62,577 bases of DNA. Source: Lenisia limosa (lineage: Eukaryota > Protista > Breviatea). This document shows, in pieces, positions 3,180-60,229 of the stretch (position 1 is the stretch's first letter; every line of letters begins with the position of its first letter). Under the pieces are notes generated by a model. It had not been told where the DNA came from, searched no databases, and saw only the letters and a list, made by a program, of their open reading frames with translations. Made by a program: the position numbers and the translations under genes. The stretch spans positions 1-62,577 of the forward strand of contig LPNZ01006074.1 in NCBI GenBank assembly GCA_001655205.1. The letters run 5' to 3'.

Positions 3180-5968
3180 TTATTTTCGCCTCTCTTTGTC
3201 ACATTTAATTCTATTCAGCTGGCTCAGCAGCATCATTACTTGGTAGGGTAGGAGTATAATGGTCTCCGTTTTGTTTGGTTCATTCTTTAGTTGCTTCTGC
3301 GCTCTCTCTTCTGGCCCTATTCCTTCTGGTTTAGTGTGAATTTGTATATAATTCTTCCGTTTGTTTTTTTTTTTGTTTTTGTAAGAGCCAAAACACTCAA
3401 AAAAAAAAAGAGAAATGGATTGGAATATCATTGAGTTCAAGCAGAAGCAATGAAGATTTGTCAAAGCCTTGGTGCGNNNNNNNNNNNNNNNNNNNNNNNN
3501 NNNNNNNNNNNNNNNNNNNNNNNNNNNNNNNNNNNNNNNNNNNNNNNNNNNNNNNNNNNNNNNNNNNNNNNNNNNNNNNNNNNNNNNNNTTCAACAGCCT
3601 CAGTGTCTCTTCTCATCGGGCCTGGTGCGGGTTCAAGAGTCTCGGTTGGCTACAATGTCGTTATATTGGGGTTTCGGATAATCAGCTTCAATTAATTACT
3701 TGGGGTACAGAATGACATACCTCGACAAGCTCTACTCCGTTAATTTGGACATCAGTGAGGGAAGGGAGGGATGGGAGATGTACGGCTTCGCTCTCGGCCA
3801 TTGGGGGCAAGGATTCCAGCCCGGTAATGGGTTCAGGCATGTGCGGCTCCATAAGTTGAATGCTCTGGGGGGGGGGGGGGNNNNNNNNNNNNNNNNNNNN
3901 NNNNNNNNNNNNNNNNNNNNNNNNNNNNNNNNNNNNNNNNNNNNNNNNNNNNNNNNNNNNNNNNNNNNNNNNNNNNNNNNNNNNNNNNNNNNNNNNNNNN
4001 NNNNNNNNNNNNNNNNNNNNNNNNNNCTGTTGGCTGACAACACACGAGGGTTGAGAACAACAAAACAAATAAAACCCAGGCCAAGGTAAAATGAAGGAAG
4101 TATCGATGAAGAATGCCGTACCGAAACTCCAAACAAATAAAAAAAAAACAAGCAATAACAAACATGCATGTTTGAACTAGACAAACCAGATGCAGAGAGA
4201 GTCCTGTAACTTAATCACCCAAACATGAGCCAAAGACAAACAAACAAAAACAAATATATATATATCATATAATATTTTTCACATGACATCCCATCGGGCC
4301 CTATCTCAACATAGGAGCACCACAGCAACATGTGAGCAAATAGGAAATGCAAAAACAAAAATGGTAAAGGGACCTCTCACTTGATTAACTTCTTCCATTT
4401 CAGGGTTTTGAGCGAAAGTAGTTGGGAGGGGAGGCAGGTTGATGGTGGCTGCAAAACGTGAGAATCATGAAAAGGAACAAAGGAATAGGGTATTTAATGA
4501 GGGGGGGTATTTTTATATCACAAATGTTATAGCGCCTCTTGGTAACCAATCTCACGTTCTTGGCCAGGGGGGATTGAAGGCATCACATTTGCAGGCTTCT
4601 AAAATGGTCAGAAATGTACAATGAAGTATGTGAAAAACAAACAATATATGGCGAATTATTTTAGTACTTGGATCTTATCTGGTGCTGGATTTGAAGTTTT
4701 AGACTGTCTTCTGGTAAAACATGACTTCATTCAATTACGCATTGAGATGCCCCACCACCCTCACAGTTTGGGTACAATCAGTGATATTATTCACTTCCGG
4801 TACCTGAAGATCCGCAAAAATGTCGGCAGGGAGACCTATGGGTGGAGGATTAAACCAAATTAAACAGGATATCTTTAATCTTGGATAATCAATCGGACCC
4901 AAACATAGTGGGTAACAAACCTTCAAGAGGGGGGAGGGACGATGTGATGTTAGGGTCCAGGTAGTGGTACTCCATGAAGCGCTACAATGTATGAAATAAC
5001 ATAAGCACATAGTTGAGCAAGTATCGAGTCGAAAACATATGTACTAGTTTGGGTCACCGTAGCATTTTGAACTTGCCAACACGAACCTTGCCTTGGAGTG
5101 CCTGAACTGCTTCCCTGTCACTAACGCATTGGTCAACCACTCTGCGAAATTCACACTCGGGGTGAAGAACATGGAGGAGCATTCGCTGCAAGATCAGCGA
5201 CCGATCCAAATCCTTTGGCACACTCTCATTTCACTATTAAATATTCCCTGCACTATACCCGACAAACCTTGAGACTAACTTTGCGGTATGCAGCCTAAAA
5301 GAGTAAAGCAAAGCAAGCATGCAGGTATGACATCAAAAAGGGAAACCACCTCACCTTGTCTTCACTGTGCCTTTTTGCCTGGAGGGCGTTTTTGATATCC
5401 TTCAACTCTTCATGGGTGGAGTTGAGGCCTCCACATACCTCTTCCACAAAACTCATGGTGGGATTTCCACGAGAGAGACGCCCTTAATTTGTTAATTTGT
5501 TGAAACAGAAGCTTGTGGTTTTTCTTGTCAGTTAACGTAAAGGTGTTCCCAGAAAGAGTTAGATTTATGGATGGAGTCTGTAAGGAAACCATTTCAAAGG
5601 CTACATTCTAAGACCTACCGCAGGCATAAGCTTCACGGAAGAAAGGAAACAGATAGTCGACAAAAACGTTGAACGGGTAACTAAAAGATGAGTGATTTGG
5701 TTAAAACAAGCACCTCCACCAACTCTTTAATTGCCTTGTTTGTTTTAGAAGAAAGTCTGCCATTGGTCATGACAAGATCACTTGACAACTCCATCATCTC
5801 AGCAGTAACAATGGGAACCGGAGCAGCATTAATATTCATCAAATGGTCTCTTTCCGGGGTAAGAGTAGGGAACTGAGTACGTGGAGGTGGTGGCACAATA
5901 CTGTACACTGACACATTTTCTCCTCCGGCAGAAGGAGTCATTGGGGGAGGGTTGGTCGCCGCTTGCAT
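3180..5968 (-). CDS. Hypothetical multi-exon protein, Pro-rich N-terminus
   Basis: ORF 5681-5968 (MQAATNPPPMTP...). Further GT-AG-bounded open exons at about 5355-5480, 5090-5215, 4735-4860, 3720-3864 (SIQLMEPHMPEP...ELVE), 3590-3655 and 3180-3325. No recognisable domain. Confidence 0.5.
4027..4086 (-). repeat. Intronic repeat family 1, copy E (intron of the 3180-5968 gene)
   Basis: ctgttggctgacaacacacgagggttgagaacaacaaaacaaataaaacccaggcc matches copies A, B and D. The intron's acceptor at 3865 lies beyond the N-gap and poly-G run. Confidence 0.7.
4086..4225 (-). repeat. Intronic copy of the Penelope-like element 3' flank
   Basis: Collinear blocks shared with 16794-16986: gtaaaatgaaggaagtatcgatgaagaat (25/29), gaaactccaaacaaa (15/15), aact.gacaaa..ccagatg, agagtcc and atcacccaaac. 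Confidence 0.75.
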
Positions 5969-6371
5969 TTTGAGATCCTTGAGAAAAATGATAAAAGGTC
6001 TTAGTTTGCACTTTATATTGTATCTATGATAGAGAAATAAGGTATTTTGGGGTATTTAGTACATACAACAGCTTACTTCAAAAACTATTATAGATAGTGC
6101 CGTCTTAGTGGAAACTGCCCTCTTACTATACTCACACACCAGTCACACCCTCACACTTACTTACTATTACTTTGCTTTTCTCTCTTTTCCTTTTCTGAAA
6201 AAAAAATTTCAAAAAAAAAATCATAGGGCTGCATTTGTTTGCTTTTCAGTCTGCTGCGAGGGGTAGGAGGGGCCCAGAGAAATGCCCTGATTTAGCGCTT
6301 AATGATTACAAGTGGTGTTTGGTATGTCATTGCAATCGTATAAATAAGCAGACCACACACGGTTCCAAACA

Positions 6372-7850
6372 ATGCTGCAAACTGAGAATTTTCCGACCTC
6401 TAGCTCAGTGTTAATCCGCAATCCTCCCACTGACACGTTTGATGGACCCCCTTCGATTAACATCCCGGCTGTAGCCCGACTGCCTTCAGTTACAAGTTTG
6501 TTGATTTCTACTGTATTCCCTTATCTGCTTAGCCTTCGCTGAACTTGATCAGCTTGGACCTGTTCATGCAATTCCCGTTGCCCCTGCATCAGGTAGGAAC
6601 ATTCCCGCGCCACTCACCACCAGACCCGTCTTTCCATTCAACTGGTGTTCTTCCAGTCCACGTAATTGCAACAACCCCCTTGCAAGACTCTTTCTCAAAG
6701 TAGATTTTTAACATGTATGATCTTATCCCGCAGCCAGCCCCCTGACATTGCATCACTGTCATTCCCTGCACCGCCTCCAAAGAAGTCCAAGAGTGTTGGT
6801 TCAAAGAATGGAGGCATTGGTAGGAACATGTTAGTTGCGGTTGACTTTTAAGGCTGGACGTCACTTCAAGTCAACCAAAGAGACCGCTTATGTCGAAAGC
6901 AGGCGCTGGGCTATCTTCAAGAGTACCACACTTTCCGCTACCAAATAGAGGTGGGAGTAAAACGAAGGAANNNNNNNNNNNNNNNNNNNNNNNNNNNNNN
7001 NNNNNNNNNNNNNNNNNNNNNNNNNNNNNNNNNNNNNNNNGCATTTTGAGTCTGGAAAAAGTTTTTTTTGGAAATACAAAAGTAAAGTCATGGAGGGGAA
7101 TTCAAAGCCTGACGTTTTAGGCGTATGAGAGGGCGGTCGCCGAATCAAAGGAAACTCGCGTGCAGATCACCGCTGTCAAACCTCTTCCTCCTTCAAAAGT
7201 TGGTGGTGCCATCAGACCATATTTCACGACTTCTTTCTCATTCAGTCTTTTATAAATAATTACCCCCCCCCCCCGCGTTGTTTATCCCTTCTGATTGCTC
7301 AGACAAAGTGGCGAAACTGCGGAGGCGGAATCCGAATGCCTTATAAAACATTCGAGAAGGCAATTCAACGAATACAAAATGTAGGGAGAGTTTCTTGTAC
7401 ATCTTAACGTTTTTAGGATGGAGGTGAAACCGTTGTTTGTGGGAGACGATGTGGGCGTCCGATAAAGGGACCATTTATGGATAATAGAGTATGTTTGGGT
7501 AAATTTACTCAAATGAAATAGTATCCTGAGTTTTGCTCTTCGCTTATTAACACTTCTAGTTGTCCCCGCCAATAATCAACGAGAACAAATGGTTTGCTTC
7601 CTTGTAACGAGTTTAAAATTCATGCACAACATTTATTTCGCCAAGTTTACCTTTCAGGCTGCTTGACAGTGGACATTACCATATGGAGAACGTCCTTCGA
7701 AGTAGGCAGTTGGTTTCATAAATGGTTACCTAAGTGACCACCTCCTAGTTTTGTCAAGGATAGCAGGGACTACAATCATTACACGTTTCAGGTGAAATGG
7801 GCTTGCCACACCAAGCAGACCACTTTGAGCCAATGGATCACAACTTGGTA
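6372..7850 (+). CDS. Hypothetical multi-exon protein
   Basis: ATG at 6372 (MLQTENFPTSSSVLIRNPP...). In-phase exons read TFAELDQLGPVH, SQPPDIASLSFPAPPPKKSK, AYERAVAESKETRVQ, TKWRNCGGGIRMPYKTF, DGGETVVCGRRCGRPIKGPF and LLDSGHYHMENVLRS. The 3' end is approximate and no family was recognised. Confidence 0.5.
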
Positions 7851-8411
7851 GGCTATGGTGTGAGCACGAGAGTAGAAGACGTGTTTGATTGTGGCGATGA
7901 GCACTAGAGTGGAAGATGTATTTGTTGGTCACTTTTTTGTGCCTTTGCTCAAGTCATTTGGTTTTTACTCCATTTAGATTTCGTCATATCCCATAGAGCC
8001 TCCAGAATCAGCGACAAGCTTCTAAGAGGGATAGGGGGGGAGAGGGGTTCTAATATAATAATATGTTTTGGGTGTAGTTTTTGTTTTCTTTCTTCCAAAT
8101 TTTGTTGTAGTATTTGCTTTAAAAGCATAGAATGTAGTTTTCTAGTACCAAATACTGTACATTAAATAAACCACAAAGCTATTAGCACACACAACATTTT
8201 ACTTGGGGAGTTCCTTAATCGATGTCTAAAGAAATAATAAGAGGCAATAGAGAAAACAACGTTGATGGTTAAACTTATGTAGTTTTTATTGGGGGGGGGG
8301 GGGGNNNNNNNNNNNNNNNNNNNNNNNNNNNNNNNNNNNNNNNNNNNNNNNNNNNNNNNNNNNNNNNNNNNNNNNNNNNNNNNNNNNNNNGAAAAGCAGG
8401 AGAGAAACAGA

Positions 8412-10952
8412 CTATTCTGGAGCAAGCTGTGCAATCATCTCATTTTGGGGGTACTCCAAGATTCCAAGTTCATCATACCCCCCACTCCTGTGAGACTGGT
8501 GGCGTTGAGCGCTGCCGTTGCACCCTGGTTCCCCAACATCTGGGAAGACGTGGAGGGTCGAGAAAATGAAGTCTCTCGGAACAATCTTGGGGGTTATGGC
8601 AAAGCTGATAAAATTCCTCCATAGCCATTTACAAAAAAATAAATAATTGGGCTCTAAACCTTGGAGCAGATTGACTTGAAAAAGTAGTCCCTGCAAGCGG
8701 CACGGTCGAATCGGTTACAATCATTTCGGGAAGAACTGACGTTCGGCAGGCTGATTGTTTAAGTATACGTGAGATGAGAGAAATAGGTACTACCTGGCCG
8801 AAGCTGTACACAGCATCACGCTTTTAGGAGATATTAGAGTATAGTATCATATTTGTAATTCACCCAATCATTTGCCTTACACCTCTGTACACACAGTTTC
8901 TGCGTGCCTCCCCAGTATAAAACCAGATACCTCACAAAAAGCTCACCCAAACCCACTGAAAAGGGCCTGAGAAGGACCCGAGTTGTGAAATCCCCCAAGC
9001 CACGGTCGATGCCTGAAATTGGCCGCAATTTCATGACCACTATCTGCTGCCTGTGTAGAGTGAAAATGGCTATTTACTAGCTCCTACTTTGAGAGTATAA
9101 ATATCAATATGATCTCAACCCTGACCTTGTTCATCCACACAAGCGCTTGATTTCCATCATAAGGAACTCCTCGCCCCTCTTCGCAAAGCTGTGCTGCGAC
9201 AAATTGCGCTTCCGAGTGACTAGATGGTGAAAACAATTGCTCCTAAGAGAAAAGCAATGTGCCAGCAGTTACAATTAAATCCTGGTAGTTGCCACTGAAA
9301 CATTTGTCATTACTCACCCTCGTTTAGCCGCCTTGATGATCCAATCCGCGCCTTCATCAACGTTCACTTCCGAACCAAAAGCCCCCTCTAAAAGGATACA
9401 ACCGTACGTATACTCTGCTGCTCCTGGGGTGTTAATTTCTGGTGGTAGTATTACTGTGATCTTAATTGATTCAGCATCAAGTGTTGTCACCCCACAAACT
9501 GTATCCCAAATCAGCCGATTTTGCTATGAGTGACAGGCCTTCTGAATTGGACTGATTTGTTCCTTCGCCCCTCAAAGTAACAATTGCCTGGAGCGTCAGA
9601 CAAATGGATTCTTGGCTCAGAAATCCTGTATTTCCAAAAATAAGACCGCTCTCGTAAAAATAAGGTAAAATATGTAAAATATTAGCGTTCTCTCATTAAA
9701 ACCAACCAATTCATAAAGACTCGGGGGGTAATCTTGTCTCGCAGCCTGTTTGAAGTTGTAAGCAGCACTAAAAAGATCCGGCTCATCGCCCTGTCCTCTG
9801 CGCATCATTTCAGCAAGATGGTGATGGCTTGGTGGATACTGCAATATCAGTACAGGCGAAACTACACTGGCATTCAAAATGCTAACAAAGAAAAAGATAA
9901 GCCTTTGTGTATTGTGTGTTGGTTAAAAATGTTAGTTCTAACGTGACTTCAGATCCAAGTCAACAGTTAGGACTAATGACAAGAAATCTCATAAAACAAC
10001 CCCTCACATTCATGTCAATTGCCATACACAGTAATTCGCGGGCCTTTGAATAACTACAAACGTAAAAAGAAGAATGTTAGGATGTTAAATGGCGTAACCG
10101 TGAGACTCTCCCCCTTCCCCCCTTCAAACTCTTTTGGTACTGCATATCCGTTGATGTATAACAGGGCCATATGGTCAATGGCTTCAGGTATGGGTTCTTC
10201 CCTTTGCGGGTTTGTTGCAGGCTCCAGCCACTGAAGTGCGCTGGCGTACTTCTTCCTGTCACTGTCAAAAGGAAAGGCTTTTATTTTAGAGGAGCTGTCT
10301 CACTTTTGATAAAATCTAACACCAAGCATGCACTGTGCTACGGGGTATTGTTCTTCAGCCGCTCTCTGGAGCCACTTTTGTCCTTCAGGGGGATTGCGCG
10401 GGCCTCCAATACCCTTGGTGTTCAGAAGCAAATCATATTACTTAAGGAGAAAAGGACATATCTTTGATAAATTCAACCCACCTTGAAGCACTCCTGGGCA
10501 TACGCAACCATGCCTTCCGGTACTCCACTTTCAGCTGCAATCTTGTGCCAGTGTCTGGTTGCAAGTAAAATGGAAACCTTGTTATCTTGGGATCACTGAG
10601 AGAGCCATATTCCCAATCCTAGTATAAAGCTTGGCCCACCTTCCAGTTTTTGGGTTCCTCTTTATTGAACTTTCTAAGGATGTGAAATTAGCGAGAAGAA
10701 ATTAAACATATCAGGGTTCATATTCTCCCATTCCCTAGCAAACCATCGGGGAATGTAAAACCTTCGAAGCAGTACCTAAGAAATGATTAGATTATCTCCA
10801 AAATGTCTAAATTAGCCCAAGAAGGCAACAGAAGAGCCCTCATACTTTGCCATTGACATCAAACCTGACGCTTCCCCCCTTTCCGCTGAGCGCTGAAGCT
10901 CATCCTGCCCTTTATATGGTTTCCTTGGCTCAATTGGTTGTCTTCGAGGCAT
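8412..10952 (-). CDS. Sel1-like repeat (SLR) protein with a Cys/His-rich C-terminal region
   Basis: Several Sel1-type repeats: WHKIAAESGVPEGMVAYAQECF, HHLAEMMRRGQGDEPDLFSAAYNFKQAARQDYPPSLYEL, AEYTYGCILLEGAFGSEVNVDEGADWIIKAA, EAQFVAAQLCEEGRGVPYDGNQALVWMNK|AADSGH. Putative ATG at 10952; 3' end approximate. Confidence 0.75.
8794..8915 (-). repeat. Intronic repeat family 2, copy 1 (Sel1 gene intron)
   Basis: On the minus strand: ctggggaggcacgcagaaactgtgtgtacag...aggcaaatgattgggtgaatta...aagcgtgatgctgtgtacagcttcggccag. Confidence 0.8.
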
Positions 10953-11226
10953 TGTGACTGCGTATTCTATTTCCCCTGCATCTCAATGATATGATCTATT
11001 GCTTCGAGTCCACTTCGTATAGTACTTGGTGCGGTGTGGAATCCTTAACGCTTGGGCTTGGCTGGGCAGGNNNNNNNNNNNNNNNNNNNNNNNNNNNNNN
11101 NNNNNNNNNNNNNNNNNNNNNNNNNNNNNNNNNNNNNNNNNNNNNNNNNNNNNNNNNNNNNNNNNNNNNNNNNNNNNNNNNNNNNNNNNNNNNNNNNNNA
11201 TTAGACAATGCGGATATGGACAAGGC

Positions 11227-13224
11227 TTAGAGGTGACGGGGCTTCTTGCAGGCGGGGGTGTCATCACCCTGGTCGGTGGTGTTGCGCTTGGTGTCGACAA
11301 TAACCTGAGTTGGTCACCAACAGACAACAGAGATCCGATCTTAAAATGGAGCCTCAAGGTAATAGCTTGGAGGTAAAGAACAAACCTGGGGCTTGTAGTC
11401 GAGATGGTTGTAGTTAGTGAGGAGCTCCTGGTACATGTTGTAGCGAGAAGTCATGCGGAAAGTCCAGTTGTCCTTAACCTGGTTGCAGAGGTTGAGGTCC
11501 ATCTCGGTGACAAGGACGCCGTCACGGGTGCGAGAAAGTCCCTGGGTGGTTGGAAATATGAAGAAATATCAGGAAACAGAAAATGAAATCAAACACATAC
11601 AGGAGTACGGTTGCCGGAGGGTGAAGCGGCGTAAGAGGAGCCGTAGAAGTGGCCGAAGTGGCTCTGGGCCTTGGCGCCGGATCCGTCGGTGAACTCGGTG
11701 GGGAAGTGCTCGGTGCCGACACGGTTGATGGCTGCGGGGTGAGAAACATTGGGTTGCCAAAAGCAAAGATCGAATGTTGTGCGTGCCGTACCGAAGGAGA
11801 AATAGGAGTTGGCAATAGCAGCGTTGCGGGCTTCAATAGGCCAGAGGGGCTCGGAGAGAGAACCGACAGTGGCACTGAAACAGTAAAAACAACGCCATTG
11901 AAGAGGTTTATGGAGCAAGGTGAACACACAAGACCACACAACTCTAGGAAACACTGGCTTACGAGGGGTTGAAGACCATCTCGGCGCCGTTGAGCTTGAT
12001 GGTGAAAAAGGGAGAGCGAGGGAGAGAGAGAGGGGAAAAAAAGAAAAACGAACATGAATAAAATACTACGAGAATCCCCCCTACGCCGAAGCCCATCCAG
12101 TTGAGGGGGTGATGGCGGCCGTAGCAGATGTTGATGCCGATTTTGCCGAAGTCGGTGTCGAAAACGGGGTGGCCGGTGTTGCCCTCAAGGTAGTAGTTGG
12201 ACTCGCAGAAGAGACCGACACTACTGGGTCAGAGCAATCCCCAACGAGTACAACCACATGGAGAAATCACCAACCGGGGGATGTGGTTCTTGCGGTGCTT
12301 GCCGATGTAGTTACCCTTGTTGCCAATGACGACTATATCAAGTTAATCTAACCAATAACTACTCTGACTTGATAAACCAATCAAGAACCCACCAGCAGTG
12401 TTCCAGAGGGTCTCGCCGTGCTCGGAGTCACGCTCAAGGATGGAAGAGATGATGACCATGTTGTACTTCTTGGCGAGCTACAAGGGTCATTTCCTATCGC
12501 ACACAAAGCTATGTTACTTGCACTTGGCCCAAAATGTTTTGAAATGTCATTACTTGAAGATTGAAAAACATACCTTAGCAAGGTGGAGGGTGGTGGGGCC
12601 GTTGACGGCATCCTCCGCGAACTGGGTCCAGGGGTGCTTCTCACGAGTGCAGAAAGCAAAAGGCATCGCTACGGACAATAAGAGCAAGAAAAAGAAAATA
12701 AATCTTCTCAGAATGATGACGTTGAAAGAAAAGTGGTCCCTCCCTGCTCACTCCAGGCCTCTTGGAGACAGCAGACGTTGGTACCGCACTTGGCAGCAGC
12801 AACAATCATCTCAGAAACACGATCGCGGATGGCCTCATACTGTTCCTTGAGGGGAGCGGTGGTGGGCTTGACAATAGCGTTCTGGATAACAGCAACACGA
12901 ACAATGCGAGCAGCGTTGAGCTCCTCAGCTGAAGAAAGGTAAGAGATCCAGAAAAAAAATCTACTCACGCTTGGCATCGAACTTGTGCATCTTAACCTCG
13001 AAATCCTTCTCATCAGCCATGGCCTTGACGTCGGCGGGAACTAACATCAATCAAAAACAAATTATATATTTCCCTACCCTCAAGAGTTCCGCAAGGGGGG
13101 CCGTACATCCATTGGCGGACCTTGGCAGCTTCGTCCTCGGGAAGCTTGTTGAGGTAGTTATCTGAAGATGAATTCCGTATATTAAATCCTGAAACATACC
13201 GACGTTATCAAACTCTTCGGCCAT
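11227..13224 (-). CDS. UPB1: Beta-ureidopropionase (beta-alanine synthase; nitrilase superfamily)
   Basis: MAEEFDNV..., [120 protein letters not shown] and [35 protein letters not shown]. Stop TAA at 11227-11229. Confidence 0.92.
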
Positions 13225-13424
13225 TTTGATTGAAAAGAAGGGATTTTAGAGGGAAAAAAATCAAATAAAAAGAAACAAATTCACGGATATATCCGAGTAT
13301 TATTCTCCTTTTCTTTCCCCTCGGTAGCTCTTAGCGCCCTCTTAGCCCTCTTATCATCTAATAATAACAACAAAAATTGTTATAAAGTATAGAGCCAAAA
13401 AGGGACAGAAAATCCGAAAGGGCA

Positions 13425-16340
13425 ATGGTTACCAAAAAAAAATCAGCTTGTGTTGTAGTCCTTGGTGACTATGGCAGGTCTCCACGAATGCAGTATCACA
13501 CTATGTCTCTTGTTGACCAACTCAACTATCATGTGGATATTGTTGCGTATAAAGGTGATATTTTTGGTAAAAAAAATCGAGGTCTTACTCTTCAAGGTTC
13601 AGCACCAAGACATGAAATACTGACCTCAGAATCTGTCACAATCCACTCCATCACTGTGAGAAGGAAAAGGCAGATTACACTGCCAGCATCACCTTCTTAT
13701 TCACAATTCAGCCTTTAGTGCTTCCACCCTCACTTCATCGTATAGTCTATCTCATGTCTGCACCGATTAAAGCTCTTTTTATGGTTTGTTGCCTTTTCAT
13801 TTATCGAACGTTATTTCTGATTCACATATATTTTAGTTTTTGCAACTCATGTGGGTACTCGTTTTCGTTGTTCCCAAGCCAGCCGTCTTTTTAGTGCAGG
13901 TGAGTTTAGAGAACAATGTTTCTTTTGTTCAATTTCTTGTTATTCTTTTCTGCTACTTTTTTTTTATAAGGTTAACCAGGTTCCTTTCTTTTTTTTTTTA
14001 TTATTATTATTTTTTTATCTAAATTCAATAAGAAAATGTTACTCAGTTTCACTCCTCTTAGAACCCACCATCCATCCCTGCAATTTTTTGCATTTGGATC
14101 GCCAGTCGCCTCAGAGGGTCAACTTCTGTCATTGATTGGCACAACTTTGGGTACACAATTCTGAGCCTTAGACTCCCTTCCAATTCCCTTGTTGTGAGAA
14201 TTGCGAAACTGTGAGCATCTTTTCGGGGAGTAATTTTGGGAGGGGATTGATTATTTGAGTGATTATCATTTTATATCCATATAGGTACGAACGGTTGACT
14301 GGGCAGATCTGTGATCGCCATCTTTGCGTCACACATGCAATGGCAGACTGGCTGAATGACAATTGGAACATTGAGTTTGAGGACTAATAATGGAGATTGT
14401 GCCAAAAACGGTCATTTAACTTAGTGTAGCGGTAATTAGTTTTTTTAATAATACTTGCACCAAGTTTTGAGAACGTACGATTTTTTCTCTCGCATAACTT
14501 CTAATTATTCAGATGATATCTCTAATATACAATTGTCACAATATAGAGCGTCAGTAGTTCATGATCGCCCTCCTTTATTCTTCCGAAAATTGGATCCTCA
14601 AGACAGAACACAGGTTTGAGATACCATTGTTTCACAGACAAGTTTTTAGCGAAGCTCTGTAGCCAAATCGACACCTGTCACCCCATCCTCCAAACGATGA
14701 AAGACGTTTCACCAAGTGCGCTTAAAGATTGTTAATTGGGTGGTACTTGTTTAGATGTTTTTCTGGGTAATTGCTGCTTTGATCATTATTTTCAGGGTCT
14801 GCTGAATTTCCAAAGTTGGTAATTTCGTCAACATCTTGGACACCTGATGAGGTTTGTGTTGGTGGATATGGGGATATTCCATTTGCTGAATTAGGATACT
14901 AAGTAATGTTCAACTTAAACATTCAGGACTTTGGACTTCTGTATGACGCGGTTGTATCTTATGACAAGAAAGCTTCAGAAGACCAATCGCTCAAAAAGCT
15001 TGTTGTGTTCGTGACTGGTGTGTGTGGTTTTTGAATGGAATGAGTACTGCAAGTTTGTGCACAATCATTGTATTCAATCACATACCCTTGGGAAATTGGG
15101 TGACACGTCATCGGAATGTCATATAGTATATGATGAATATGATACCACGGTGTCATACAATATGATATGCATAGGTGTGATATTTCACGTAGTATAATAA
15201 ATTAAGTACTATTTTTCTGACCATCTTCTCTATGATATTGAGAAACATTGAAAAAGAACCCAGATTTTATATATTCTAACAAGAAACAAGGTCTTCTCAT
15301 AATAATGTGACCAGGAAAGCAAAATAGACCCGGGAACCAGTCATAACCACATTATAAAGGAGGTCTTCCAGTTGAAGAAGCCATTTTCATTATTTAGGAA
15401 AAGGTCCTCTTAAAACGCATTACGAAGAGCTTTTCGCTTCAAAGCCGCTGCAAAACGTTGTCTGTGTAACTCTATGGCTTGAAATCGAAGATTACCCACT
15501 TATTTTAGGTTTGTGTGAAATATTTGAAAGAACATGGTAATTGTTTTTATCATCATAGGATCATGTGATCTTGGTGTTTCCCTCCATGCCTCTTCGAGTG
15601 GATTGGATTTACCAATGAAAGTTTGTTGGGATACTGCATCTTCACATAGCAGTTAAAGATTTTTTTATTATTTGACCCTGATAATAGTTCTTATATTATA
15701 ATAGTTCACTGTATCAGTCTGCACTTCTTTTCATTCCCTCCATCCATTTATGTTGCAGGTTGTGGATATGTTCGGTGCGGGGCTTCCTGTCTGTGCCCTT
15801 CAGTTCATGTGGTATGCTGGGTTGGCAGTTACAGGTATGGGCATTACGGGAGTTATCTTGTTCCCCTAGTTGGTAAAATCCTTCATTAACAGAAATGAGG
15901 AATTTAAAGTGTCCGTTCACGCCATTGTGTTATAAAAGATGATGATATTTTAATGCACTCGGCCATATGTTAGAGTTCAACGTGTTTAGTCTTGATGAAC
16001 TGGTGAAGCATGGTGAGAACGGACTCACATTCTCAAGTTCCGATGAACTCTCTTCTCAGCTCCAGGTATGGAACCAAGGATTAGTCAAATGTTAGGCGAA
16101 CATAGTTAGGTAAAATATGGCTCATAAATGGTTTGGCATGAAATGTCGTTACATTTCGATAGTTATGCTTCCGAGCAATATTTACAAATCAGAGCTTATT
16201 TGGAGAGAGTGATGAAACCCTTTCACGTCTGGCTGAAGGAGTCAAAGATTTTCAGGTAAGAATATCTCTCTGATTAACCTGTCTAGTCCATTCGATGGGA
16301 CGATGAGTGGAACGCCCACGCAAAGCCGTTGTTTTTTTAG
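13425..16340 (+). CDS. ALG1: Chitobiosyldiphosphodolichol beta-mannosyltransferase
   Basis: [93 protein letters not shown] and C-terminal RWDDEWNAHAKPLFF*. TAG at 16338-16340. Confidence 0.92.
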
Positions 16341-16781
16341 ATTATTTATTTCATTTTGATATCAGATTATATATCATCGATATGGGATCCCAAACTGAGG
16401 TACATACCATAAACATGCATTGAAACGGAGAAAAATAGCAGAAAATGCTGTAAGTCACTTGGGTTAAAGTAGGTCCCTTGATTTTCATGTGGAGATTCAG
16501 TGGTCACTTAAGCCTACCCACTTTGTCAAGTACACATTTTGGGGGTTTTACTCGGCAAGCTAATAAGTCAGTGGTTGATGTCAAAGTCCTTCATTTCACG
16601 ACAAAAAGAATGGTACTAGTCTGAGAGACTAAGAACATAATGGCAATCTTCGAAACCGTGTTGATATGTTATGTACTATGACACTTATACCTCTCCAATA
16701 GTCTCGAATCACTTGATGAGAGTAAACGTTATCGTCATCCTCCCAGGTATCGTCCCTGACTAATGAACTTTTCAAAAAAAA

Positions 16782-18000
16782 GGGGGGGGGGGAGTGAAAC
16801 GAAGGAAATTTCGATGAAGAATTTTGGCGTAAAAGTACAAATCACGAACCGAATAATCTGAAACTCCAAACAAACAACATGAGCAACCAACGCTAAAACT
16901 CGACAAAAGCCAGATGACAAAAACACAAAAACAAAAACAAGCCCGAGCCAGCCTTTGAAGAGTCCCAACCGCTCGATCACCCAAACGTACCTGTAGGCGT
17001 TAAGTAAGGGAATGTTAAAAAATCCGACTTATTAACAACGCTTAGAGCCGTCCCAAGCATACGACCCCGAAGGGGATCAAAGCTGGACCAGACTGGAGAA
17101 AAGTATCTCTACAGGTACGAACAATATGGTGTCAAGCAAACTGTGACTATTCTAAACCATACTGNNNNNNNNNNAATGGTACAAAAAATGGGTTGGCTGG
17201 GCAAATACAAAGCACAAAATAAAACAAAACAAACACAACAAAGGGGCACAAGTCAAAGGTTATTAAGCTGAGGGGAATAAAAGCACTAAGTTAATCTTTG
17301 AACCTAGACATTGTGACAGACTTGGCGCATAAGGCGGCCGCGTCTGGGGATAACGAATCGCAAGGACACGTTGACGCCTGTGTCCATTAGCAATTAACTT
17401 TTTTAAGAGTAATACAGCAGCCTGAAGGCGGTAATTGACAAAGCCTAGCATATCGAGTCAGTTGGCCAATAATAATTCCTTTCAAGATGTGTTTAGGTAT
17501 AGTTGAAGAGGAATGAGGATATTGGAAGACTTCCAAAGGAAAGTCCCTGCTTTTGTCAAATATTGAAAGGAACAACTTTCTCCTTTGAACAGAGATATGA
17601 ATACCTAAGTAGTTGCATACTCCAGGGGCGACAGTAGTGTTTTCCAAACGGAGCGAGTCCGGATAGATCACACGCCCATCATCCCTCAGGAGAGTTAGTA
17701 AGCAGAGTTATCAAATCGTCGTGAGGGTCTACAACGAGGAGATCATCAATGAACCGAAATGCGTTGTGAAAAGAAGAGATTAACGGCGATTCAGGCGGAA
17801 GTGATTCAATAAAGTCCCGTTCAAAAGAATAAAGGCAAATGTTAGCCAGCAGAGGAGCTGCGTTGGTTCCCATTGGAATGCCAATTTTCTGACGAAACAC
17901 AAGAGACCCGTTTTGGACCACAGTATTTAGAACCACAAACTTCAACAACCTAAAATCTGATCACGTGTGTGAGCTAATTTTGAAACCTTTGTAACGGGAG
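16782..18000 (-). mobile_element. Degenerate, 5'-truncated Penelope-like retroelement (RT C-terminal half/thumb plus 3' flank)
   Basis: Intronless RT motifs RQKIGIPMGTNAAPLLANICLYSFE, FRFIDDLLVV, IYPDSLRLE, CNYLGIHI, IFDKSRDFPLEVFQYPHSSSTIP..GIIIGQLTRYARLC and LLKKLIANGH are spread over three reading frames (ORFs 17679-17948, 17387-17671, 17263-17451), which implies frameshifts. No endonuclease seen. The element limits are approximate. Confidence 0.85.
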
Positions 18001-18178
18001 AGAACTATTTTTTCACTGAATGTCAATGAAAGAAACGATTAAAATATGATATTATTGATTGTGGACGGCTTCGGCCAGTTAAAATCTTGTTTTTTTTCTC
18101 AATTCCATGATCAGAATTTGACTTTTCTTTTGCAATTTCAGCTATTCTGATTAGGCCAGCAAAAAACAAAAAGACCCG

Positions 18179-18250
18179 CCCAGTAAAAAGACCCACATTT
18201 CAGCATAGCCGAGCCAGTAAAAAGACCCACATTTCAGCATAGCCGAGCCA
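18179..18250. repeat. 34-bp tandem duplication (2 copies)
   Basis: ccagtaaaaagacccacatttcagcatagccgag occurs twice in tandem. Confidence 0.85.
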
Positions 18251-19398
18251 GCGAACGCGGTATTGTAGCCGCCTGCCAACAATCCGATGCGAAACCAGCC
18301 GCTCTACCATAAACAAATCTTGCTCCTCCTGTACAGTAAGCGTCATTTGCAACTCTTAATACTGTTTCTCATATTTACAAGCATATGGAAAACTCCCTGT
18401 CCAGATAAAATGCACACCAAGGGAATCTCTATCATCAACTGAAGAACACAAGAAGTACCCACCAGACAAGACAGTATATTGAAGAGCATGAAAAGGATAA
18501 CAGTAAATGCTAGTAACGTTCAGTGATAGGAGCAGTAAAAAGGGAGTAGTAAAATACAAAAGTACAATAGTGGAAAGAATATCTTCAACATTAGTTCAAC
18601 AATCAGTTTTAACCATCTCACAAAAAAAAAACAGGAACAAATGGTAACTTGATAACAGTTTTTATAGTTGGCAACAGAAAATGAATGGAGTGTCACAAAT
18701 CTCCCCAAATAAATGTATTTTAGTAATATGATAACGAATTACTGTGAAATAGCTTACATAAGGCACAGCGGGGTCAAAAACTTCCTCGTTTTGTGATGCT
18801 ATGGCGACCTTCGAGCACTTTGTCGTATATAAGGTTATATTAGCAACCTTTTTTAATGGTACATTCGCCATTTGCCTTTATTTCTTTATTTCTTCTCCAA
18901 TTTTTTTTTTACATTTTAAAAAAACTATCTGGGTTATATAAATTGAACACCTTCCTCCTGTCCCTCTTTTTTTGTTTTTTGACCCCTTTACTCAATGCTA
19001 GTTACTAACTATACGCTAGTAATTGTAATCAAGTGATAAGGTCGAAAAGTAATTCTAATCATGTGGCCTCTCTGTTTTTTCCAACTATGACTCTTTGGTT
19101 CAGTGGCTGCTTGAGCAATTCGGAGCGTTAACACCTGTATAACACAACAAGCAATTACTGGGCTGAATTGAAAATGAAACAGCTGCGACTTTTCTTCTTT
19201 ACTTGGAAGCCCTCAAATTCAATCTGAATTGTTGAGCCTTGTATTTGACGAATAGTCTTAAGGTGGGGGGGGGGGGNNNNNNNNNNNNNNNNNNNNNNNN
19301 NNNNNNNNNNNNNNNNNNNNNNNNNNNNNNNNNNNNNNNNNNNNNNNNNNNNNNNNNNNNNNNNNNNNNNNNNNNNNNNNNTATTCTAAATTTGTGAG

Positions 19399-22300
19399 AT
19401 GAATATTATCTTGCTACTTTCGTTTCTCTCTGAAACCCGAATGGAATATCGGCATCGGTTTCGACTATTGGTTGGCTTTCCAACATTTCTTTCTCAAAAA
19501 TTTCTACAGCTTGTTGAAAATAAAGGAGGCACTTTGCCTGTGCCGTGGACGATGTCAGCCATCCCGCCTTATCCCAACAACACGGATGTGTCGTCGACGT
19601 CAGCCGAGTCCTTCAACTCCTTCCATGAACGATACTTCAAGGGCAGGACTGAGGAGTTTGACCCTTCATTGGAGTACTTCGAGGTTTGTGGTTGATGAAC
19701 ATTGTGACAAGGAAAAATGACCCCCCCCCCCCCCCCNNNNNNNNNNNNNNNNNNNNNNNNNNNNNNNNNNNNNNNNNNNNNNNNNNNNNNNNNNNNNNNN
19801 NNNAATTTTGGGAGGGACAGTTTCAGTCTAAGTGAACGTAATGCAATTAGTCGACTCTTACCATCGTGTACCCCGCTCTGCTCTTTCTTGTTGCCTCAAT
19901 TCTGTTTTCCATTATGTTTTGGATGATTCGGTGCTGCTGTAACGGCTGTGGCGGACGAATGGGCCGCGCTAAAGGTGAGTAAGAATTTTGATAGGATGAA
20001 TCAATTTTTACATGATAGCCATGGTTATATACATTTTTCGGTTTTTCTTTGAACATAAAAGGGACAAAGAAGAAGAATGTTGTCTCATAATTTAGGATAC
20101 AGCAGGGCTGAGCGATGGTGGCCTCGAGTTCTCATTATTCTGCTCATCCTTCCAATCATTTTCGCTTTTGGCCTAAGTCTAAACGTAGGGTTACTGGTCT
20201 TCATACTCAAATGTAACCTGGACAATTTACACCGTAGAAATCCATAAATCTCAATGACCTTGTTGGAACATTTATGACAGCTATTGCGGATGAAGTGGCC
20301 GACATGTCAGGAAAAATCGCGGCTGTGCATCGCAAAATGATCGGTCTGAGGTCTTGGTCAATATACCGTATCAGAATTAACGGTCATATATTCGTTGCAT
20401 TTCTCAATTTGGTAGTTGTGACAATTTCAACAGGAGACATCCTTATAATTCCCAAATGACATGTCTAGAATTGGACCCGCCGTTGGACTCGTTGGAAGAC
20501 TTTAACGGTAATATTGAGGACATTTTGCAAAGCCTCTCAACTCAGGTTGGTAATGTGAATGGTCATTCTTTCTAATTCGCAGATGGCCGATATTACAGAA
20601 AACGCTCGTGGTGCTCAGGACATGATTTTGGGCATTATGACTTACAGATGGACTGGCGTCTTTGTAACTTGTATGTGGAAAGTTGATGCTAATCAGATTT
20701 GTTACATGTTCATACTTCACTAATTTCGCATTTTGTGACTTATTTTCCCTCCGTAGACAACCTTGCAATCGTGGTGGTTGCAATGGCTGGTGCTGGAGTG
20801 TTCTTCACAACAAGACGGGCCGTGCTCTATGCAGGATTCTGTGGCTTTGTGGTGGCGCCATTAATCATCTTGGTCTTTACTCTGCATCTCACTGCAGCCA
20901 CTATTACGGATGACTTCTGTTTTGGGTTGGTTTTCACATTCCTGTTTCGGATGTAGCCTTTTTTTCAAACAGCAAAATTAAGTACATATTATCCATACAA
21001 ACCTTATTATAATGTCAACTTCTAATGATCAAGACTGGACTCGTTCCTCAATGAAGATCTGCCGTCCAATGCTGGAATTGACTTTCTCCTTCATTGTCTC
21101 AGCGGAAATGTGTGCTCCTGAGTTGAAATATAATGAATTTTCTCTATTTTTGCGTTTAGAAGTCAATTTAGTGACGTTTTAGGAATTGGATTTTGCCTAT
21201 ATTGTTGCCGTTTCTGGGATGAACGAGGAGGTGAGTCACATAACGATGAGTACTGAATGAATTGAGAAAAACAACCCTTCTCATTACTAGATTGACAATT
21301 TAAACAAAATCATTGTTGATGAGCTGAATGACGCACTTCCCATTACGGTGCCGCACGTAACTCACGAAGTTCAGCAGGAAGAACTGGAGTGGATCCAAAA
21401 TGGTGGGTCTTCCCGGGGCAATTAGATGACATCATGGGAATACAAATGATAAGAGGATATTAATTATATTCAATCAATGTAGTAGTGTCACATCAGCCAA
21501 TAGAATACAGTATAAATAATCCTGTTTAGAATTATTTGTTTCGACTTATCTCTCATTAATCTTCCCCAGTTGTCAACACTGCAGTTACTATCGCATCAAC
21601 TGTAGATCCGGTATGAGAACAAAATATCATCATATATCATATTATATGCCATTTTAATGGTTATCCGGCGTTTATCATTTCTCAGACCATATTCACTCCT
21701 CAGATTGCAGACCAAGAAGTTTTTCAGGAATTAGTCCGCATTCAACAAGCAATTAACGTATGCAGTATTCTTGATGTAATGTTTTGATTGTTTCAGGACT
21801 ACATGGATCTTCTTGCCAGTATATTGGAAATGATTGATTGCGGAAATGTTCGCGATCTTATGGAAACGTTGCAGGTTTGATGGCTTCACTTTTTTTCCAA
21901 ATACACTCGACATAAGCCTTGTGGAAAATATCTGAAGCAGTCTCCCATTTGATATCATTAGCAACTTCTCTGCGAAGAGACATTACCTGCAATTGTGGAC
22001 ATCGCTATAAGTCGGCTGTTTTCTAATTGAAATTCCAGTTTTATGTTATTAGTGAACTGCTTACGATTTTTTTTTTATCTTTTATCTACAAATGTGTTAT
22101 ATCAGCAAATATTATAATGTAGATATGATAAATTTCTCTATTATACCATTATACTAAGTGCATGTGATTGCTTCGTACGTGGTGATCTCATCCGACGGAA
22201 GCAAAACTCATCAAGCAGGTGAAGCAATAGCAGGTTCAATGCTCGTCTTACTTACTGCAATTTGTGTGATTGGATACAAACGAATCCATGCAGTCTATCG

Positions 22301-27651: not shown

Positions 27652-29665
27652 TTAGGGTCTGACGAGACGAATGGGGAAGTTTTCAGTGATGATGTGGTTG
27701 TCGGAGAAGAGGATGATGAGATTGACTTCGAACTCAAGCTTGAAAGCTCGTGTGCCGATTGTGGGGCATGTGAAGAGGCGGGGGAAAACCTGGGGGTCAG
27801 GACCGAAGCAGCAATCAGCGTCACACATCGCATAAATCAAAACTCCAAAAAACACACACACAACGAGTGGATAGAAGAATGTTTCAAATAGTTGAGCAAT
27901 CGTGTCTCACCATGAAAATTGGGATGACAAGCTTTCGGCAAACATCGCCCTCCGCTATCTGTACGTTTTGGATTTCCGTTGCTGGGGAGTAAAATAGGAA
28001 CATTTATGAAACAAAAAAAGCCCAAATCAACTCTGTTGAACAACACGCGAAGGTTGATAACAACANNNNNNNNNNNNNNNNNNNNNNNNNNNNNNNNNNN
28101 NNNNNNNNNNNNNNNNNNNNNNNNNNNNNNNNNNNNNNATTAAAATGATAGATGAACTGACGCAGAAATAATCAACAGATGGTTAAAAAAGCACTTGCCT
28201 TTGTTAAGCACAATGCCAAGCTCACCATCTCGAACTTCGTTTTCTCCTAAACACACTGTTTCAACTCGCACAAGCTGAAGCTCTAAATTGTCAATGGTTT
28301 ATATGACGCAGTCGACAAAATACTGTTTCTTCGCCATCCCTAGCAAACCTATTTTTTTAATCTCAGCGTCACACGACTGTACCACCAACTCCCCAGTTAG
28401 GGGTTTGTTGATTGCACACACTGCTGAAGCTAACTTGCCAAATATCTCGAAATCCGGGATGTTTGAGAGCGAGTTCTGTTGCAGTAAGAAGCCACTACTG
28501 ATAATTGTCGGGGACTGGAAAATAGGTGTTTTCTGATATTCCCATCTCATAAAATTTGAGCATGGCAATTTGATCCGGTTTAATATGAAATTTCTCAATC
28601 TAAACGTTTCCCACATCCGCAGCAAGTTCCTCAAAATATCACCAACCTTCTTGACATTCTCCAGGGATGCGGGTTTGATGCTGAAGTTCACCGGCTTGGC
28701 CTTGACAACTCTCCGTTGATCCTGCATTTCGGTAAACTGCCATCGTCGTTCGCACAAACTAACCAATCTCATGCCCCCCCCCCCACCTCATTTTCTACCA
28801 CGAATTCTATATCCTTTTCCAGGGTTTTTGATAGACCACTCCGTCTCAGGGCAGCCTTGAGGCGATACTCAATATTCACAAAGACCTGAGCTGTGAAAAT
28901 GGACATATCACTGGAGGGGACGGGGTTCAGGAATGTGTATTGATATTATATGAGGGCAATGGAAAAATGATAGCCAGTTTTGTGAGGTTGCCATTCGTTC
29001 ATTAACTTATATTTATTGTTTGTTGAAATTTTTTTGTTTATTTTTAATCATCACCTGTTAACAACAAAAGAAAGTATATTAGCCCATCTGAAGAGCAATT
29101 CCCCTCCCTCCCATACCCCATGATATGTCTCATGGATGACTTGACTGTCCAGAGCCTTGAGCGGGATCTCGAAAGGTACCTCCGTCACTCCCTCGGGGAA
29201 CTTGCCGGCCTTCACCACCTCAACCTGCGGTGTCATGGAACAAACCATATTGGGGGAAAAACTATCCTAGAAGAGTATACTTGATCCATAAAAGCGATAT
29301 TGTAGATAGACATATAAGTTGAGTATCCCCAGTCATTTAAAACTTGTCAGAGGCCCACCTGATACTGCACGAGAGGAGTTGGTTTAAGATTATTGTAGAA
29401 TGCATCAAGGAGCCCGATATTATTGGGGGAAACTTGGAGGGAGAGAGTACCTTCCTTAGAGGATAAGTAGGTTTGGACATGAAGACTGTAGCAAACCAAA
29501 AGAAGTGTTAGCCCTTGATGTGATAAGTTGCTGTTAGCCGAAACAACAATTGTTCCAGTAACAGAAGTCTGGGGGAGGGTCAGCAAAGCCTATATACCTT
29601 GGAAAACAAACATTGGGGTGATAAACTTTATCAGCGTTCTTTAATCTGATATTGATAGATGACAT
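27652..29665 (-). CDS. VPS26C: Vacuolar protein sorting 26C / DSCR3 (Retriever complex subunit)
   Basis: MSSINIRLKNADKVYHPN, GTIVVSANSNLSHQGLTL, NNIGLLDAFYNNLKP, GKFPEGVTEVPFEIPL..IHETYHGVFVNIEY, LELQLVRVET, DATEIQNVQIADGDVC and FPRLFTCPTIGTRAFKLEFEVNLIILFSDNHIITENFPIRLVRP*. Confidence 0.92.
27982..28065 (-). repeat. Intronic repeat family 1, copy A (ends at the acceptor AG of a VPS26C intron)
   Basis: + strand ctggggagtaaaataggaacatttatgaaacaaaaaaagcccaaatcaactctgttga; near-identical to 31854 and 30313. Confidence 0.8.
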
Positions 29666-59900: not shown

Positions 59901-60229
59901 TGAAAGATCTTTACAGTCTCATCAGTAATCCCTTCAGAGTATACGAAGTGTCTTGCAGGCGGCCACAACACCGCTGTAATCTACACAACTGAGAGTTCTC
60001 TGGTACGGGGTGTTTGAGATGGCGTGGGGATTGTTCTGATTGTGGAGTACTACTTCCTCTCGGGATAGTTTCTCCCCCCCCCCCCTCAATCTTACCAATT
60101 GTACTTATTGCAGTTTTTACCGATCCCAGTTGATTTTTGTCGATGTTACGATATTTTACACCTCAGCTTGTTGTTCTTCCTGAGAATACCTTGAAGGTGT
60201 CTGACTCTTTCGTGCTGGTGTGCAAGTAA
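53916..60229 (+). CDS. Glycoside hydrolase family 31 alpha-glucosidase (lysosomal/secreted GAA-like), with signal peptide
   Basis: MGNSVRRLVLLSSLLLALFS, PNLYGLGER, MYGTHPYLYEVR, TYR|TSGGVIDLFVFVGP, PPPWALG.HQ, VIWADIDYMDGFRVFSTDP, VIMDPGI, VWPGKVIFPDFSHP, DGIWIDMNEP (catalytic nucleophile motif), RPFILTRSSFSGSGHYGFHWG|GDN, TFYPFYRNHN, QFFFGSNFLVAPIL. Stop TAA at 60227-60229. Confidence 0.92.
55451..55561 (+). repeat. Intronic repeat family 2, copy 3 (GH31 gene intron)
   Basis: ctggggatgctcgcagaaagctgtgtacacag...aggcaaatgattgggtgaatta...aagcgtgatggtgtggacagcttcggccag. Confidence 0.8.

Follow-up and report, generated by a model that had tools for sequence, protein, structure and literature searches.

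Penelope-like retroelement tails and the 3' ends of introns in the breviate Lenisia limosa

Among the Penelope-like elements (PLEs), the Naiad and Chlamys retroelements (Craig et al. 2021, PMC8557442) are distinguished by a CxC motif, by the replacement of DKG with DKA followed by a conserved cysteine eight residues later, and by a permuted architecture in which a GIY-YIG endonuclease precedes the reverse transcriptase (RT). Introners, which are high-copy intron sequences found in unrelated genes and carrying splice signals (PMC9860276, PMC12130899), are mostly DNA transposons, with long terminal repeat (LTR) elements accounting for 12% and non-LTR elements for 5% (PMC12130899). The text of PMC12130899 mentions neither a Penelope-like introner nor a breviate. 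Described here is contig LPNZ01006074.1 of the breviate Lenisia limosa (assembly GCA_001655205.1), the whole 62,577 nucleotides (nt) of which are referred to as the window and which consists of intron-rich eukaryotic DNA with many assembly gaps. Its minus strand carries a 5'-truncated copy of an RT element, the 3' tail of which is a dispersed repeat. This tail and a separate, ~140-nt repeat, family 1, supply the acceptor ends of introns. What is new here is that a Penelope-like RT is named as the partner of intron-end repeats. A first-pass annotation of the window had set these repeats against Introners attributed mostly to DNA transposons, a contrast that is weaker than it appeared since retrotransposon-derived introners have already been described (PMC12130899).

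The element has much in common with Naiad and Chlamys, including the similarity of the RT, the CxC motif, the DKA motif with a cysteine eight residues later, heavy 5' truncation, partial tandem or stacked copies, very high copy numbers, and the lack of a hammerhead ribozyme. Unlike Naiad and Chlamys, however, no endonuclease part was found, and two copies begin just upstream of the CxC motif. In addition, the 3' end is formed by a branch-site-like word and a C-run, and copies are concentrated at the 3' ends of introns, not at microsatellites. The canonical PLEs (Penelope/Poseidon, Neptune, and Athena) carry a hammerhead in their terminal repeats that was not found here, but in this regard Naiad and Chlamys are also without it. 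The endonuclease-less Athena and Coprina elements resemble the L. limosa copies, in which no endonuclease was found, and likewise have a short C-rich 3' stretch that could pair with a G-rich DNA end. They are telomeric and contain hammerhead motifs, whereas the copies described here lie in genes, no hammerhead was found, and the pairing is a proposed model. Finally, PLE-X, which bears the CxC motif, lacks an endonuclease, and occupies one 28S ribosomal DNA site, would be similar in its precise choice of target.

With Introners the L. limosa repeats share the high copy number, the location in introns of unrelated genes, and the possession of splice signals. They differ in that, as a rule, the element accounts for the 3' part of an intron only, its 5' end varies, and it contributes no donor of its own. 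Another parallel is provided by pairs of short and long interspersed nuclear elements that have a 3' tail in common. Non-coding, short family 1, of which the genome contains at least 2,844 ends, shares ~25 nt of its 3' end with the tail of the RT element, for which there are at least 1,334 ends and ~50 RT copies. In contrast to such pairs, the sequence in common is short and falls on splice signals, and mobilization in trans is putative.

The reverse transcriptase element and its tail

The element copy in the window runs from position 17999 to 16782 on the minus strand. Its 5' truncation at 17999 is defined by alignment to other genomic copies, the homology to which ends there. Two RT-coding open reading frames (ORFs), at 17679-17948 and 17387-17671, encompass motifs B and C and the thumb region. 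They match RVT_1 with an E-value of 6e-5, and the two RT pieces are 47% and 37% identical to P0013 within residues 827-1000. The region 3' of these ORFs, from 16990 to 16782, opens on the plus strand with a G11 run followed by AGTGAAACGAAGGAA, as the first-pass annotation had recorded. In addition to the window, 68 loci (~190 kb) were read, and consensus sequences and a profile were built for the short non-coding ends.

The stretch from 16782 to 16990 constitutes the 3' terminus of a Penelope-like RT element and is dispersed in the genome, where it has over 1,300 ends. Its boundary is sharp and common to more than 25 copies. On other contigs, the path from the RT to the tail is tiled by overlapping alignments that correspond to 17999-17086, 17566-16987, 17330-16782, and 17242-16782, and at least 10 copies are involved. 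The possibility that the tail is an independent repeat with no connection to RT copies elsewhere, which had been raised at the first pass, fails on these alignments. As counted by the terminal 15-mer with no more than one mismatch, the tail has at least 1,334 ends, compared to 20 for the control. The number drops to 62 candidates for the next 175 nt, to 51 for the RT thumb, and to 10 for RT motif A. This steep fall in abundance toward the 5' end is the truncation profile expected of target-primed retroelements and is typical of PLEs.

For the classification of the RT, a 262-residue RT ORF from L065, a member of a sister RT family of this genome, was compared with 1.84 billion representative proteins. 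Its RT core has 1,617 relatives, the best full-length ones of which contain 950-1065 residues and show 32-38% identity with E-values of 1e-27 to 1e-31. The top full-length relatives display a GIY-YIG domain at residues ~100-230 and the RT at residues ~580-950. A CxC motif is found upstream of the RT in L045 and L041, both from the sister RT family, where it aligns to P0013 residues 471-510, and the 5' boundary, located just ahead of the motif, is common to both copies. The window copy is truncated before the region in which the motif would lie. The DKA motif with a cysteine eight residues downstream was seen in one copy only, namely in L045 (ORF 414-800, aligned to P0013 593-632). The spacing between RT motifs A and B, which is long in the Naiad/Chlamys clade owing to an insertion in the fingers domain, is ~85 residues in the L065 ORF. 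On the basis of these relatives and of the motifs of the sister family, the RT of the element is assigned to the Naiad/Chlamys (N-terminal endonuclease) branch of the PLEs.

The designation "Penelope-like" is, by sequence, supported for the RT; an N-terminal GIY-YIG domain is absent from the copies seen. A search of the L. limosa genome with P0013 gave matches to residues 589 and beyond only, and none of the five genomic GIY-YIG matches falls on the RT contigs listed. The ESM Atlas returned unnamed clusters only, together with a weak HTH_animal hint. A distant RT relative, P0027, has an N-terminal chromodomain and no detectable GIY-YIG domain. The long copy of the window sits in a chromodomain gene, but no link to the chromodomain of P0027 has been shown.

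With Rfam, no family reached the gathering score in the window, none was found at E ≤ 1 in 16600-18300, and no hammerhead ribozyme was observed. The predicted folding of the tail RNA is not unusual in stability (z = +1.0). A discrete unit of ~210 nt with GT...AG termini was also considered, given that many matches stop at query position 207-209. This stop proved to be an artifact of the query end, and the copies continue upstream through a constant junction.

The sister RT family terminates in a different repeat, ~160 nt in length and containing a hairpin, that is continuous with the RT sequence in no fewer than eight copies. Since both tail families are contiguous with RTs, two of the intron-associated repeat families here are tails of Penelope-like elements. 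The linkage of two or more intron-acceptor repeat families to the 3' termini of Penelope-like RT elements provides a concrete and testable engine for such repeats. Note that the intron holding the long copy also contains a fragment of the second family's tail (18040-18080), which on the minus strand lies immediately 5' to the point where the long copy is truncated.

Acceptor ends supplied by the tails and family 1

The tails and family 1 supply intron acceptor ends, not donors, in that TTTTAC and a C-run precede the AG and the element is in the sense orientation relative to the gene. At the end of the tail, TTTTACT precedes a C-run, which varies in length and is at times interrupted by a T or an A. 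In a local sample of 47 ends with readable flanks, an AG follows the pyrimidine tract directly in 21 cases and within 2 nt in 25. Genome-wide, there are 126 sites with TTTACT, C6, and A, and the next base is a G in 73 of them (58%), as opposed to the fifth or so expected from base composition.

Splice sites were deduced from Pfam profile matches of single exons. Exons just past such ends were checked in this manner in a kinesin gene, a chromodomain gene, an AAA (CDC48-like) gene, and a VWA gene. In all of these the element is sense and forms the acceptor end. The AAA and VWA exons, which are located on other contigs, start immediately past the repeat ends. Similar copies occur within the introns of these unrelated genes and of a GH31-like gene. 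Within the window, six to seven of eight copies are sense and at or near acceptors. The long element copy lies, in the sense orientation, in a ~1.5-kb intron flanked by the two halves of a chromodomain, and its C-run precedes the inferred acceptor by ~25 nt. The best-resolved intron is that of the kinesin gene from 31953 to 31854. The flanking exons match positions 66-88 and 89-129 of the kinesin profile, and because the match holds on both sides the intron is exact. On the plus strand, GGGAGTAAAA forms the end of the family-1 copies at 27985, 30318, and 31857, in agreement with the first pass, which reported this terminus for family 1.

A profile constructed from the last 212 nt of 20 genomic copies matched the window at 16988-16794 (E = 1.6e-58) and at 4192-4086 (E = 6.6e-10, profile positions 73-212), with no other matches. 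The collinear blocks at 4086-4225, to which the stretch at 16782-16986 had been aligned at the first pass, are a true second member of the family, and they adjoin family-1 copy E at the junction 4085/4086. The shared 10-mer by itself is only about twofold above chance (20 matches at one mismatch versus 9.9 expected), and the significance of the tail matches therefore comes from the longer alignments. A third, shorter copy is found at 6951-6970. The DNA past the adjacent gap (7041-7262) is unique, and this copy must consequently end within the gap. The first-pass annotation placed it immediately after a predicted donor. The exact terminal 15-mer is indeed present, but the donor at 6950|6951 is predicted from a gene model that has no Pfam support. 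The possible gene in question (6372-7404, plus strand) has reading frames that are consistent and may use an acceptor at 7302|7303, and Pfam identified no family in its four exons. A regular-expression scan for antisense ends at donors produced no useful cases, and the length of the open frame following the AG did not differ from that at random AG sites (p = 0.18).

Terminal fragments had been proposed at the first pass either to supply or to seed intron ends. The supply of acceptors is borne out by the Pfam-checked exons, whereas the creation of introns by the retroelement is not supported. In the kinesin intron, the one intron so tested, a single insertion does not account for the whole: ~45 of the 100 nt are derived from the element, and the 5' 61 nt match only themselves in the genome. 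The 5' ends of truncated copies vary, and these copies contribute no donor. Flanking them on the 5' side is either unique DNA that resembles an old branch site and pyrimidine tract or the TTTTACT and C-run of another copy, and such flanks look like old intron ends or earlier insertions.

An Introner-like origin was considered in which Penelope-like tails, singly or as inverted pairs, create introns, the sense end furnishing the branch site, the C-run, and the AG, and the antisense end furnishing the GT donor. Ends with ready splice signals and thousands of copies across unrelated genes would be in keeping with such an origin, inverted 5'-truncated partner copies are known for PLEs, and some copies have G-run/GT variants that would make good donors. 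The possible intron 6951-7302 would start with an antisense tail end and finish with the sense C12 end of another family. The unique 5' half of the best-resolved intron argues against it, however, as does the lack of a fixed 5' end, and hence of a fixed donor, in the truncated copies. Likewise, a GT continues after the AG in only 2 of 19 flanks, with no AGGT-type duplication, and the donor at 6950 belongs to the gene model mentioned above. Creation of introns in this fashion is accordingly regarded as quite improbable. We favor, with some reservation, the view that the elements extend and rebuild the 3' ends of introns already present without creating introns, and that they home to these sites through pairing of the tail.

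Target choice and the link to family 1

According to the favored scheme of rebuilt intron ends, the element would be copied by target-primed reverse transcription with frequent early stops, giving rise to 5' truncation. Priming would occur on the purine-rich antisense strand of the branch site and pyrimidine tract of an existing intron, or of the end of an earlier copy, with the TTTTACT and C-run of the tail base-paired to that strand. By analogy, such pairing would be reminiscent of that of endonuclease-less PLEs on telomeric overhangs. The new copy would land between the old branch site and the AG. As the insert would bring with it a replacement branch site and pyrimidine tract, splicing would survive the insertion. 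Template jumps between RNAs, or repeated insertion at one site, could generate the stacked copies, and family 1 would probably be mobilized in trans by means of the shared end.

The location of the ends could also be explained by random integration followed by selection, in which case a sense copy carrying a strong branch site and pyrimidine tract would be retained only if the AG that follows is a true acceptor. Elsewhere a strong 3' splice module would activate cryptic acceptors. Consistent with this explanation, 42% of the C6 sites are not followed by an AG, and the long copy of the window lies ahead of its acceptor, not on it. Neutral sites, either intergenic or antisense within introns, should then dominate, which is contrary to the orientation and placement of the copies in the window. 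Stacks at single intron ends furthermore point to repeated hits on one target. Targeting is favored over random insertion with selection because acceptor sites make up a tiny share of the genome, yet about half of the ends are located within 2 nt of an AG. Selection acting on random insertions is, in our view, an unlikely explanation.

The relationship between family 1 and the tail is limited. Family 1, which the first pass had raised as a possible sub-segment of a Penelope-like element, is not a sub-segment of the tail. Only the last ~25 nt are alike, and the tail profile detects no family-1 copy even at E ≤ 10. An alignment of the full-length tail to the family-1 consensus was rejected as evidence, its score (z = 1.9 versus shuffles) not being significant in T/G-rich DNA. 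When the last 28 nt were compared in an end-anchored fashion, the score of 11 was reached in 3 of 5000 shuffles. Without the final seven nucleotides (TTTTACT) it was reached in 214 of 5000. Tail ends are also fused directly to 5'-truncated family-1 segments with variable entry points in 5 of ~35 ends, including that at 4085/4086, and the reverse order is also seen. Family 1 and the tail share at most a terminal recognition or splice module.

It is conceivable that there is no partnership at all, the TTTTACT and C-run simply reflecting the composition of host acceptors and branch sites. The failure of the tail profile to find family 1 and the modest full-length alignment score are in agreement with this explanation. 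Ordinary introns here have TTCAC/TTAC-type motifs 8-12 nt before the AG, and other C-run families end in different words. The similarity of the last 28 nt, so rarely equaled by shuffles, and the fusions of tail to family 1 with variable entry points speak against it, and two wholly unrelated repeats are considered rather unlikely.

Several observations weigh against rebuilding and homing as the explanation for these ends. Target-site duplications were not clearly evident, with the exception of single suggestive cases, and targeting and purifying selection are not separable here. Neither an endonuclease domain nor a full-length element was recovered, although a gapped assembly may miss full-length copies. 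The link between family 1 and the tail rests on ~25 nt (p about 6e-4, or 0.04 without the last seven nucleotides), and a convergence of the two sequences on splice signals could account for it. The copy at 6951 may be antisense at a predicted donor. Finally, protein profiles are the sole basis for the assignment of splicing.

A broader form of the homing model can be put forward tentatively, and with more doubt than the rebuilding of intron ends itself. Here, an endonuclease-less Penelope-like lineage would home to intron 3' ends with a tail that mimics the branch site and pyrimidine tract, it would drive short repeats that depend on it and number in the thousands (family 1 among them), and inverted double insertions would sometimes make whole introns. 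If the targeting model is correct, the element would be the first known case of a retroelement that targets the 3' ends of introns, and its mode of insertion would represent a new endonuclease-free integration route for PLEs. If the homing interpretation holds, both the target and the cargo of the retroelement would be a 3' splice module. These issues bear on the growth and turnover of introns in an organism in which introns are tiny, and on whether retroelements of this class seed introns.

Other features of the window

The positions of the element parts, the repeat copies, and the associated exon stretches are provided in Table 1.

Table 1. Coordinates of repeat copies, element parts, and neighboring exon stretches in the window
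Positions	Strand	Feature	Basis or remarks
3865-4085	-	Family-1 copy E, 5'-truncated, split by gap 3881-4026	Ends in C14 then AG directly; candidate acceptor
4086-4225	-	Second tail copy, 5'-truncated, without C-run, directly upstream of the family-1 copy	Profile match 4192-4086
6951-6970	-	Third tail copy, terminal 20 nt	Exact terminal 15-mer of the tail family; remainder lost in gap 6971-7040; antisense to possible plus-strand gene with predicted donor 6950|6951
8781-8919	-	Solo hairpin-tail copy	In an intron, sense
16632-16766	-	Downstream chromodomain exon stretch	Chromo profile positions 30-52; acceptor inferred near 16756
16782-16792	-	Terminal C-run of the long copy (G11 on plus strand)	~25 nt upstream of the inferred host-intron acceptor
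16793-16990	-	Terminal ~200-nt tail of the long copy	Ends in a branch-site-like motif, here TTTCACT; profile E 1.6e-58
16991-17386	-	3' untranslated part of the element, including 10-N gap 17166-17175	Spanned by contiguous alignments of other copies; 62 first-look candidates genome-wide
17387-17999	-	5'-truncated RT coding part: motifs B and C, then thumb region	ORFs, RVT_1, P0013 match
18203-18352	-	Upstream chromodomain exon stretch	Chromo profile positions 1-27; donor inferred near 18230
27982-28066	-	Family-1 copy ending in C-run and AG	5' part enters a gap
30313-30447	-	Near full-length family-1 copy; acceptor end of the last kinesin intron	Another C-run upstream
31854-31953	-	100-nt kinesin intron	Family-1 3' fragment, terminated by C-run and AG, makes up the last ~45 nt; 5' part unique
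32998-33072	-	Family-1 5' part in the first kinesin intron of the window	3' end lost in a gap
48302-48428	-	Solo hairpin-tail copy	In an intron, sense
55449-55593	+	Hairpin-repeat 3' tail of the second RT family	Sense in intron of a plus-strand gene, 19 nt before the acceptor

Two short tandem duplications are associated with introns that contain these repeats. The first (18180-18251) consists of 2.1 copies of a 34-nt unit, 100% identical, and spans the exon-intron junction and the donor at the 5' end of the element-bearing intron of the chromodomain gene. Its unit falls within the 30-40 bp range described for the "tail" extensions of PLE insertions. The second (33067-33123), composed of 2.2 copies of a 28-nt unit with 80% matches, covers the end of a kinesin exon and the donor region directly upstream of the family-1 5' end. 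The pattern is the same in both.

C-runs of 10-12 nt are located on both strands at 7263-7274, 31437-31447, 38816-38826, 44741-44750, 58074-58085, 60074-60085, and 61885-61895. They are preceded by differing ...AC-type words and often followed by AG, and they probably mark other repeat families with similar ends.

The assembly gaps very often begin at a long C/G run, as at 3867-3880, 8291-8304, 19265-19276, 19721-19736, 30447-30457, 33258-33268, 49144-49155, 58074-58085, and 60884-60896. The gaps are probably breaks at homopolymers and repeats, and their estimated lengths are hence unreliable. Those at 8305-8390 and 11071-11199 are flanked by unique DNA and make no contact with the features described here.

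Elsewhere in the window, 40-nt tandem repeats form arrays of five copies at 50796-51035 and three copies at 52877-52998, with 93-98% identity. A long C/T-rich, triplet-like repeat region extends from 37500 to 38012 and probably encodes, on the minus strand, an acidic low-complexity stretch.

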